Part shown: piece after piece, positions 26,501-29,500 of the stretch
Layout: each line of letters opens with the position of its first letter
Position numbering within the stretch: the stretch's first letter is position 1
NCBI RefSeq assembly: GCF_052425735.1
Contig: NC_135770.1
Coordinates: 29,264,001-29,328,000 of the forward strand
DNA length: 64,000 bases
Source of the DNA: Oculina patagonica
Taxonomy: Eukaryota
Reading direction: 5' to 3'
Translations under genes and position numbers: made by a program
The notes under the pieces: generated by a model
Seen by the model: only the letters and a program-made list of their open reading frames with translations
Told to the model about the DNA's origin: nothing
Databases searched by the model: none

Positions 26501-29500
26501 AATACGCCGACCAAAACAATCAATATGCTTGCCAAACAAGCTTAACAATAGATTAAAGATTCCGAAAGTACGCATTGGGATTTTGTAATTGCCTGATAGT
26601 TCCGACAACTTTGTAACCACATTTTTCACCACTTTACTGCAAAGTTGGCAGAGGTGAGCGAGTCTGCGAAGGAAAGTTTTTATTTTGCGACAAATCCAGG
26701 CAATAACTTGGAGAAATTGCTATCCTCGTCGAAGATGACAAATTAAAGAGCTGCTGGCCAGGAACAGTGAAAGGATCCCGAAGAACACTAAAAAAGGTAA
26801 CCTTTTGGTGTTTGAATGTTTGGAGTGTGTTAGCAACCGAACAGATTGAACTGCAACGAAATTCTGAAAAAGAGCATACGTCGAGGCATGAGTACCGGAA
26901 CGCATTTCTCATGTTTTCAATTAAGCAATTGCTCAGTAGTATTTAAAATTTAACAACAGTCAAGGTAAAATAAATCATAACGTTATTAAAGTAAAGTTGT
27001 GTTTTGTTTGTAATGCGAGTCTTGTGGCTTTGCTACCAGGGGAATATTATCATAATATTCCCCTAGGGGATTGTTGTAGGGGAATATTAGATATCAGCCC
27101 CCCTCTCCCCTGATACAATCAAAGCCGCCTCCAGCTTTTCAGACAGTTGCTAATTAGCGGGGTTTATTCAATATAATCAGCCTCGAAGAACAAAGGAAAA
27201 CGACCCTTGTAAAAATTTTACCGCGATCGCGCCGCGATTGCCGCGATCGCGCCGCGAATGTCGCGATCGCGCCGCGAATGTCACGATCGCGCCGCGAATG
27301 TCGCAATCGCGCCGCGGTTTGTTGCAATCGCGACGCGATCATGCGCGACGCGATTGTAAGTGAGCGCGAACGCGCCGCGATTGCCGCGATAGTCGCGATC
27401 GCGGCGCGATGAGTTCGATCGCGGCGCGATTGATTACTACCGCACCGCGATTTGGGGGGCTGGAATAAATCTCGGGAAGTGTTCCCGGCGAGAACTCACT
27501 TCTCGATCACCGGGAGAAAGTCATTATGCTTTGAAATTCTCACAAATCATGCTGTGGTCGTAACGCAAATCATGACTGTATTGATGAAATAAACTTAAAG
27601 TACTAATCAAAGTAGTAATAAAACTAGTTTGATTTAAAATGTCGAAAAACATTTTAATACGTGACGGTGAGCCGTGAGGACGTCATTCCCACGAGAAAAG
27701 TTTTATTTAGTTTTAGTCTAGACGAACTGGCGCGACAAAGCGGCGCGTGATAATGAGTAAAGATAAATCAAAAGATAAGAATTTTTTATTTCTTTGCAGT
27801 CCGTTTTTTAATCTTTTCAAACACTTTGCTTCTTTGACAAATTTCTGTCGGCCATTTTCTTCAAATGCAAATACAATCAGGAATTCGCTGCAATTGCGTT
27901 TTTCGCATTGAAAAATTCTCTAGATGGCATTTAATTTAATTGTGGCTCCGAAGAGGCTGTCGGAATGAGCTTTTTTTAGAGATTTATATTTACCTTCCCG
28001 TAGACCACACACATCGACGATGTCCTTAGATTATTCCCGCCTTTTCCCGCAAGGTGTCGTGAACTGAGCGTTACGATTGGCTGAGTTAGGTCACGTGGGC
28101 CATTGTACACGCCATCCCGAGCAGAAAAAAAAAATTATTTTGAGTTTATATAGTTGGAATGCTTTCTCTTCACAATCAGGACTGGAAAAATGTGTTCTTT
28201 TTTGGCTGCTTCTGTCAATAACATGAGTTTAGAAGCGACTTAACTTTAGGGAAAAGCGTCTCTGTGGAAACTGCTAGAATTAGTTTGTTAATTCGAGCGA
28301 CGTACAGCTTGTTAATTTCGACAGCGCTATCTTGTGACCTCTTGTGGGATTCGTCACGGACTTTGTTGACTGAACTATACAACTGTGATTTTTAAAAAAC
28401 TGCAAAACTCGAACAGTGGAAAGAGATAAACATTTTGACGGTAAGGACCATTCAATGCGAAGTTGTACCTGTTGATGCTTGGGACTTAACTGTTGTATTA
28501 TTTAAAAAAGCTTCGGGGAAAAACGCATCTTCGACGGTTCGGCTTCTTCGCAGATGCATGACCAAGAGATATATAGTTCGCTCGTTTGGTAGATCACATC
28601 ATTGCATCTTCCTTCGCTTGAGCACGAGGAAAAGGTTAGTTGCCGTTATGTATGTGTTGTTCCCTTCGTGACATTTTAGAGAAGAACTGTTCACTTATTT
28701 GCTTGTAAACTAAAGGCTCACGATCTCCGGTTTGTGACCATTGCGAAATATATGTGCTTGACAGCAAAACTGGCCGTCTTTTTCTGTAACCTTCTGTAAA
28801 TAAATGATGTTGTTTTGATACAGAGCCAGTGTGTTTGTTTTGTCGGTGTGCAAAACGCCAAGATAATTGTTTTTAAATTCAAAGATTTAGGCGCGATCGC
28901 GGCGCGATCCAAGCCAAATCGCGGCGCGATTCCCGGCCCATCGCGCCGCGAAGTGAGAATCGCGGCGGCCAAAAACGCGGCGCGATCCCGGCACGAATCG
29001 CGGCGCGATCCAAGTCCAATCGCGCCGCGATCGCGCCAATCGCGGCGGCCAAAAACGCGGCGCGATCGCGGCACGAATCGCGGCGCGATCCAAGCCCAAT
29101 CGCGGCGCGATCGCGGCGCGATCGCGCCAATCGCGGCGGCCAAAAACGCGGCGCGAATCGCGGCGCGTTCGCGGCGCGATCGCGCCGCGATCGCGGTAAA
29201 ATTTTTACAAGGGGAGCCATGTGAAAAATAAATACCGTATATATATTTTTTAGTCAGCTTAACAATATGTTAACCAGGGCAAAAATTAAACCTCAGACTT
29301 TTGATTGCTTACTAAATTAAATATTTGTCTAGCCTGCACCATCTCTGATGGTCACTAACTCAGTTGATTATAAACAAAACATTATATTTAATTATTTATC
29401 AAAACTTACCAACATGAAGGAAAGCATCATACTTTCCTTCTTGTGCTTCTTCCTGTAGATAACTTATAGATTTAGCATTGACGCTCCCAAGATCTCCATA

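Follow-up and report, generated by a model that had tools for sequence, protein, structure and literature searches.

A gene-less, CpG-dense transposon with palindromic subterminal arrays in an intron of Oculina patagonica and its two-gene CCCTT-ended relatives

Which proteins move a transposon that carries no gene of its own, and what reads its ends, are questions raised by a 2,010-bp element located at positions 27204-29213 of a 64,000-nt stretch of contig NC_135770.1 of Oculina patagonica, the window of DNA studied here, to whose positions all coordinates refer. This element begins with CCCTT, ends with AAGGG and carries dense arrays of a CpG-rich palindrome near both ends, and is referred to below as the CGCG element. 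Our results indicate that it represents a new, unusually CpG-dense, non-autonomous family of the Mirage-like CMC group. With regard to its mechanism, we favor, at a probability of roughly 0.55, the reading that the window holds a young non-autonomous copy of a high-copy, Mirage-like CMC/EnSpm transposon, whose arrays are docking sites for a dimeric, most likely BEN-type protein supplied in trans.

Termini, palindrome arrays and CpG content

Direct reading of the window places the element, with sharp boundaries, between two copies of the dinucleotide GA (27202-27203 and 29214-29215), in the context aaaacGA/CCCTT...AAGGG/GAgcca, which corresponds to a 2-bp target duplication. Its terminal inverted repeats are 38 nt long, with the left arm on the plus strand at 27204-27241, beginning with CCCTTGTAAAAATTTTACC, and the right arm on the minus strand at 29176-29213, ending in ...GGTAAAATTTTTACAAGGG; they display 95% complementarity and are identical over their first 28 nt. 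Within the window, the 19-mer CCCTTGTAAAAATTTTACC is confined to the two arm sites, with 0.05 occurrences expected by chance.

Inside these termini, a window scan with the 12-mer ATCGCGSCGCGA, allowing up to one mismatch, gave 46 strand matches where 0.14 were expected, all of them within 27226-27430 and 28896-29191. The underlying unit is the 13-mer palindrome ATCGCG-S-CGCGAT, present in 25 copies spaced at 20-22 or 11 bp, none of them farther than about 310 bp from an end: 10 constitute the left subterminal array (27221-27451), where the spacing is mostly 20 bp, and 15 the right one (28886-29196), where it is 11 or 22 bp with a higher-order period of 80-91 bp. The central base is mostly C in the left array and G in the right one; therefore, the arrays are inverted like the termini.

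The CpG observed/expected ratio is 2.31 in the left array (230 bp, 66% G+C) and 2.00 in the right array (311 bp, 71% G+C), as compared with 1.23 in the interior, 0.58-0.66 in the flanks, whose G+C content is 37-38%, and 0.44 in a neighboring 12.7-kb element described below; for the CGCG element as a whole it is 1.85. A CpG island, as defined by Gardiner-Garden and Frommer, spans at least 200 bp with a G+C content above 50% and an observed/expected ratio above 0.6, and both arrays qualify in length, G+C and ratio. The full CGCG-S-CGCG core is retained in 25 of the 26 motif copies of the window, and only 2 of their 52 central CpGs read TG or CA. The corresponding counts in older relatives from a coral metagenome, presented in the next section, are 7/54, 4/48 and 3/22, so that such arrays do decay with a methylation signature, and the intact CpGs of the window copy are best explained by youth. 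In cnidarians, methylation is highest in the youngest transposons, especially within long active genes (PMC8857917); thus, the high CpG content constitutes no evidence for an unmethylated state. Among the positions listed in the comparison with aligned contigs, few are contradicted by essentially all contigs, at least four of them within the element (27684, 27917, 28848 and 28880).

The CGCG element has no notable open reading frame, its longest ones being read-throughs of the GC-rich arrays, and its interior (27452-28885) is non-coding. Searches for transposase or BEN exon remnants inside it, by tblastn with the exons of the window and with 192 fetched proteins and by our own BEN hidden Markov models (HMMs), yielded chance-level matches only. 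The host gene is a purple acid phosphatase (ACP7-like) encoded on the minus strand, represented by a Pur_ac_phosph_N exon at 30821-31090 (Pfam E-value 3e-12), a Metallophos_C exon at 6103-6327 (Pfam E 2e-13), and further exons at 29402-29599 and 24524-24742, all on the minus strand, the last two recognised by reading their translations and carrying no Pfam score. Since phosphatase exons are found on either side, both the CGCG element and the neighboring 12.7-kb element are intronic. A preliminary description of this locus, made from its letters, had reported the CCCTT start, the AAGGG end and the 2-bp duplication, subterminal arrays of ATCGCG(C/G)CGCGA, and barely decayed CpGs in an AT-rich intron, and these observations were all borne out, with the palindromes being restricted to the vicinity of the ends.

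A mobile, high-copy family of the CCCTT-ended group

The JGI metagenome contigs were scanned for the exact 22-nt terminus of the element, and four contigs from one coral-metagenome sample (Ga0126336) were matched, in which this 22-mer forms the element end, the flanks are unrelated to those of the window, and arrays of the same palindrome type are present. For five independent ends in this metagenome, the similarity to the window starts precisely at CCCTT. One complete copy was recovered (L003, 1578-2743), 1,166 bp long, flanked by GT/GT and inserted in a gene with Ig-domain-like exons. Furthermore, part of the sampled 31-mers of the element were recovered from sequencing runs belonging to 10 studies, labeled as four organisms, a coral metagenome and a viral metagenome.

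Abundance was assessed in three organisms as contig depth summed over all Logan contigs at 90% likeness or more, a measure that is not a formal copy number. Over the CGCG element the summed depth is about 5,000-18,000 versus 30-230 in the unique right flank (29286-29687), a rough 100-500-fold excess. The right boundary is confirmed by this drop from thousands to 30-230 just beyond the right arm, while the left boundary was placed by comparing the element with its other copies, the left flank being itself a high-copy repeat. A candidate extension of the element into that flank was rejected, as the left flanks of other copies are unrelated and the high depth there belongs to a different repeat. 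With independent insertions flanked by 2-bp duplications, the CGCG element is a mobile, high-copy family.

The left-flank repeat (26204-27203) displays a summed depth of 5,000-14,000 in the three organisms, and its end is the insertion site of the CGCG element. Within it, a nearly perfect palindrome of 97 nt spans 26207-26303; the repeat has no second copy elsewhere in the window, and none of the fetched loci matches it.

For the identification of relatives, one catalytic exon of the transposase of the neighboring element was compared by phmmer with 1.84 billion representatives, giving 262 matches. From these matches, and from relatives of the transposase P0259 obtained by word search, 19 loci were fetched, with a tree being used to spread the sampling, and transposase and BEN-partner exons were searched one by one. 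Nine CCCTT-ended elements, including the CGCG element and the L003 copy, could be read end to end, and all nine are flanked by 2-bp duplications, namely GA, GT, TA (five times), AA and TC. A transposase gene is present in six of the nine, as judged by matches to the window exons or to Transposase_21/DUF1258, and transposase identity across the group is approximately 39-80%. The full-length transposases of the relatives match both Pfam families, Transposase_21 and DUF1258, with a C(2)C motif following the second D, and on these grounds the CCCTT group was placed in CMC/EnSpm, whose members are mobilised by DDE transposases (Transposase_21) bearing C(2)C and H(3-4)H motifs.

A 2-bp target duplication is a characteristic of Mirage, and in this respect, as well as in the transposases of its relatives, the CGCG element resembles Mirage and CMC/EnSpm transposons; it differs in that the CGCG family is known from gene-less copies, and in its termini. 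The CMCT clade shows target duplications of 2-5 bp and termini of the form 5'-CA..TG-3' in most cases (PMC12730594), while the CGCG element ends in CCCTT..AAGGG and carries neither CA..TG nor CACTA termini. Its terminus is thus atypical for the clade, and compatible with membership given the wording "in most cases" (PMC12730594).

The 12.7-kb neighbor, at 7984-20655, is a two-gene autonomous element of another family of the CCCTT group, with its transposase on the minus strand and a BEN partner on the plus strand, CCCTTACCAAAG ends, a TA duplication and arrays of TATGGGA; its start was corrected here to 7984, and it is not the partner of the CGCG element. Its spliced transposase includes exons with a weak Transposase_21 match and the D...C(2)C signature. 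Both elements share the CCCTT end, a 2-bp duplication, subterminal arrays and residence in the same intron-rich host gene; however, their ends agree over the first 5 nt only and their motifs are different. The interior of the CGCG element displays no nucleotide or protein similarity to the neighbor or to any fetched locus, and its origin by internal deletion of either was rejected for want of shared sequence. Conversely, the CGCG terminus agrees at 14 of 17 positions with CCCTTACAAAAAT, the terminus of a two-gene group, as opposed to CCCTT alone for the neighbor. The proposal that the two elements of the window are sisters therefore stands as regards a common terminus class combined with another subterminal code, whereas the closer affinity of the CGCG element is to the CCCTTACAAAAA group.

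In this last group, the elements related to P0259 (transposases 39-78% identical to it), comprising clades A-D and the outgroup P0297, all end in CCCTTA[C/T]AAAAA, and their subterminal regions are enriched in other motifs, the top 7-mer being GCATGCA in clades A and C, GTATGCA in clade D and TGCACAC in clade B, with ACATATG and TGCAGCA in L023, the P0297 locus. In the family of the neighboring element, sampled at four loci (the window, L005, L007 and L010), the top 7-mer is TATGGGA, and in a small element nested in L006 it is ACTGGCA. Across the CCCTT group as a whole, the terminus is conserved, the subterminal motifs change from one family to the next, and most of the members sampled possess a second gene of BEN type.

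The small element of L006 (13402-15255) is a 1.85-kb gene-less CCCTT element with a TA duplication, and its TGCCAGTG arrays are confined to one end. A one-gene relative at 7474-15390, whose flanks AG/TT form no duplication, either encloses or adjoins it. At 15601-16600 of the same locus there is a tandem array of 11 units with a 91-bp period, each unit starting with CCCTTGTCAAGACG, and one inverted copy is located at 17235, about 700 bp past the array; the arrangement resembles a satellite derived from a transposon end of the CCCTT type.

BEN-type partner genes and the reading of the arrays

Nine loci, whose elements are either complete or partial, contain a BEN-type second gene next to the transposase. 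Four of these belong to the TATGGGA family (the window, L005, L007 and L010). In the window element, the second gene is divergent in sequence and encodes a Tudor-like portion together with a BEN domain (Pfam E 5e-5), and its orthologues in the other three loci are 63-80% identical. In the CCCTTA[C/T]AAAAA group the gene is present in 5 of 5 distinct elements (L018, L019, L020, L022 and L023; L021, a second copy of L020, was not counted as distinct). The partner in this CCCTTACAAAAA group, a divergent gene adjacent to that of the transposase, is laid out as a Tudor-like exon, a low-complexity exon and then two exons with a BEN-like domain, on which the Pfam BEN model gives weak values (E 0.03-0.17). 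A profile comparison of the window BEN family with the L018 exon gave a probability of 82% (E 1e-5); HMMs built from four elements of the group recovered L023, which was outside the training set (E 7e-9 and 2e-5), and touched the Pfam-positive exon of L007 (E 1e-3). A word search with the BEN exon returned only relatives of at least 61% identity, probably all of the TATGGGA family.

According to the reading that we favor, a transposase supplied in trans would recognise the conserved terminus, while a second trans-acting protein, dimeric and sequence-specific, would dock at the approximately 25 phased 13-bp palindromes, coat both subterminal regions and help to pair the ends, a role analogous to that of TnpA on the subterminal repeats of En/Spm. 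All the two-gene relatives sampled suggest, by analogy, that an autonomous element most likely encodes this docking protein as its BEN-type partner. This docking by a dimeric BEN partner is plausible but unproven, and we infer from sequence comparison the binding of the arrays, the BEN nature of the binder and any effect of methylation upon it.

The likeness to the dSpm/I derivatives of En/Spm (CACTA) extends to the superfamily, CMC/EnSpm, to the short conserved terminus with a 2-3-bp duplication, to dense subterminal arrays of a CpG-containing motif of about 12 bp in both orientations, which bind TnpA in En/Spm, and to a two-protein system in the autonomous relatives, by which gene-less derivatives are moved in trans. 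The CGCG element differs in having CCCTT rather than CACTA at its terminus, an animal host, relatives whose accessory gene is Tudor-like/BEN-type rather than TnpA, and a motif that is a perfect 13-bp palindrome composed almost wholly of CpG.

Several results weigh against this reading. Among 23 animal-derived loci there was no autonomous element with the CGCG terminus or arrays; neither the CCCTTGTAAAAA end nor the CGCG palindrome occurs in any fetched locus, the sampled elements having CCCTTAC or CCCTTAT ends and other motifs. L006, a CCCTT-ended element with an intronless, 44% identical transposase, has no detectable BEN gene, and likewise none was seen in the truncated relative L011. In the CCCTTACAAAAA group, subterminal motifs are loose and differ from one end of an element to the other, so that a simple rule of one BEN protein to one motif is not evident there. 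Finally, the window palindrome TCGCG-S-CGCGA has a 1-nt spacer, and a G where the BEN domain of BANP prefers T. Further searches for copies or for the parent gave no match to the terminus in viral contigs, six bacterial matches in genome contigs versus 4.3 expected by chance, none with arrays, and, when a spurious open reading frame across the array was used as a handle to other copies in the protein collection, 723 candidates of which none scored.

The preliminary description had advised finding the autonomous partner of this terminus and its BEN gene, and by way of transposase relatives no such partner was found in the fetched loci; a BEN protein of the CGCG family's own is for this reason deduced from relatives. 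It had also suggested that these families share a transposase-recognised terminus while each has a private pair of BEN protein and repeat. The group-wide CCCTT end and 2-bp duplication, the family-specific motifs and the BEN gene in nine loci agree with this idea, whereas the CGCG parent is missing from it. As for BEN divergence tracking the motif, the last helix of the BEN domain hardly varies in the CCCTTACAAAAA group, where the motifs all have TGCA-like cores, and the TATGGGA family combines a very different BEN domain with a different motif; the direction is as predicted, but it is drawn from two independent groups only and amounts to no correlation.

Among the alternatives, the transposase may itself bind the arrays by means of a DNA-binding domain at its N terminus, in the manner of Ac/hAT, with no accessory protein involved. 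L006, with its related transposase, CCCTT ends and lack of a detectable BEN gene, fits this view, as do the Cys-rich stretches in exon 1 of the transposase of the neighboring element and the common occurrence of subterminal transposase-binding sites in other superfamilies. Nevertheless, the accessory gene has been kept beside the transposase in nine loci in which transposase identity falls to about 39%, and this conservation next to divergent transposases argues for a function in transposition; moreover, a perfect 13-bp palindrome would be a fitting target for a symmetric dimer of the kind that BEN proteins form. We therefore regard binding by the transposase alone as unlikely, albeit a serious contender. 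It is rather doubtful that the CGCG family is an orphan moved by the abundant CCCTTACAAAAA-group transposases, which would need the terminus only, the arrays serving another purpose or none. The match of 14 out of 17 terminal positions would be expected under this scenario, and the 12-nt terminus of the group is invariant across transposases that are only 39% identical, so that terminus recognition looks tolerant of protein divergence; the failure to find a dedicated partner among the loci sampled points the same way. Against it, terminus positions 6-7, directly beside the cleaved end, differ (GT versus AC), the palindromes are far more uniform than neutral sequence, with a full core in nearly every copy, and the sampling for a parent was small and blind.

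Two further views would detach the arrays from transposition. That host factors, such as BANP-like BEN proteins, CXXC proteins or methyl-CpG binders, read them as mobile CpG islands or regulatory modules is very unlikely in our view: the arrays do qualify as CpG islands, the TCTCG half-sites of a related family equal the BANP BEN site, and arrays of the CTCGCGAG palindrome are found in other repeats of related genomes, yet the CGCG motif departs from the BANP site in its 1-nt spacer and its G in place of T, and the arrays, strictly subterminal and inverted between the left and right ends, are arranged as transposition signals are. Passive tandem expansion by slippage of a GC-rich unit, leaving functionless arrays, seems scarcely credible. 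The higher-order periods of 20, 80 and 91 bp reported by a tandem-repeat finder do indicate that duplication built the arrays; still, one palindrome type has been retained not only at both ends but also in a second family and a further coral sample, with spacing held constant at one or two helical turns.

The comparison with BANP deserves closer attention. In protein-binding microarrays, the half-site of its BEN domain is TCXCG, where X is T, then A or C, and the BANP motif from chromatin immunoprecipitation, TCTCGCGAGA, consists of two half-sites without a spacer (PMC10206803). The metagenome family of the CGCG type keeps the same palindrome frame with positions 4 and 10 variable: within one array, TCTCG-S-CGAGA is interspersed with the hybrid form TCGCG-S-CGAGA and a small number of TCGCG-S-CGCGA copies. 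That its half-site, ATC[T/G]CG, includes TCTCG, the site preferred by the BANP BEN domain, counts in favor of the docking reading. The likeness thus lies in a CG-core palindrome and in the half-site ATCTCG of the metagenome family, which contains TCTCG; the CGCG family is unlike BANP sites in having an extra central base S, G at X where T is preferred, and tandem sites numbering in the dozens instead of a single promoter site. Owing to the spacer and the G at X, the resemblance, as judged from the motifs, is a partial one. The preliminary description had taken methylation-sensitive binding of CGCG cores by BANP as established, which would hold at best for the full protein in vivo, as the isolated BEN domains of BANP and BEND6 bind methylated and unmethylated CGCG DNA about equally (PMC10206803). 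Its further suggestions, that the CGCG version could be switched by methylation and would deposit portable CpG islands, are conjectural, apart from the fact that the arrays qualify as CpG islands. It is a speculative and distinctly doubtful extension that a transposon-encoded BEN dimer recognises BANP-type half-sites TC[T/G]CG, that methylation gates its binding and transposition, and that the family seeds coral genes with hundreds of CpG-island-like clusters of BANP-type sites; if true, it would link CGCG recognition by animal BEN factors to the end-recognition proteins of transposons.

The CCCTT group appears as an animal counterpart of plant En/Spm, with a very conserved terminus of 5-12 nt and family-specific motifs, and the CGCG family as its most extreme case, combining dense near-perfect CpG palindromes with high copy number and location within genes. 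Should the arrays prove to be BEN docking sites, the group would offer paired protein and site variants (TCGCG, TCTCG, TGCATGCA, TATGGGA) for the study of DNA reading by BEN domains, and one could test directly, in an invertebrate, whether transposition is gated by CpG methylation. In addition, hundreds of intronic insertions, each with two CpG-island-like blocks, matter for the coral methylome and for the interpretation of CpG observed/expected ratios.

Other repeats in related assemblies and in the window

Arrays of the palindrome (A/G)CTCGCGAG(T/C) were also observed in other repeats of the ENA assemblies, at 16590-16860 of L018 and 17950-18140 of L023, the latter adjoining a DDE_3/HTH_32 gene (Tc1/mariner-like). 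Arrays of CGCG-core palindromes may represent a recurrent end design across transposon superfamilies.

To the right of the CGCG element, a very high-copy short repeat occupies 29688-29955, with a summed depth of 145,000-516,000 and a second copy at 47966-48204 (76%). Its loose ends carry a tRNA-like GGTTCGAGCCC box, and on this evidence it is probably a tRNA-derived short interspersed element. A 516-nt inverted repeat, 100% perfect and with a gap of 347 nt, is formed by 45250-45765 and 46113-46628, and may represent either a foldback element of very recent origin or an artefact of the assembly. Lastly, a 261-bp tandem repeat is present in 3.7 copies at 49507-50494, with a 95% match and a tRNA-like segment in its unit.

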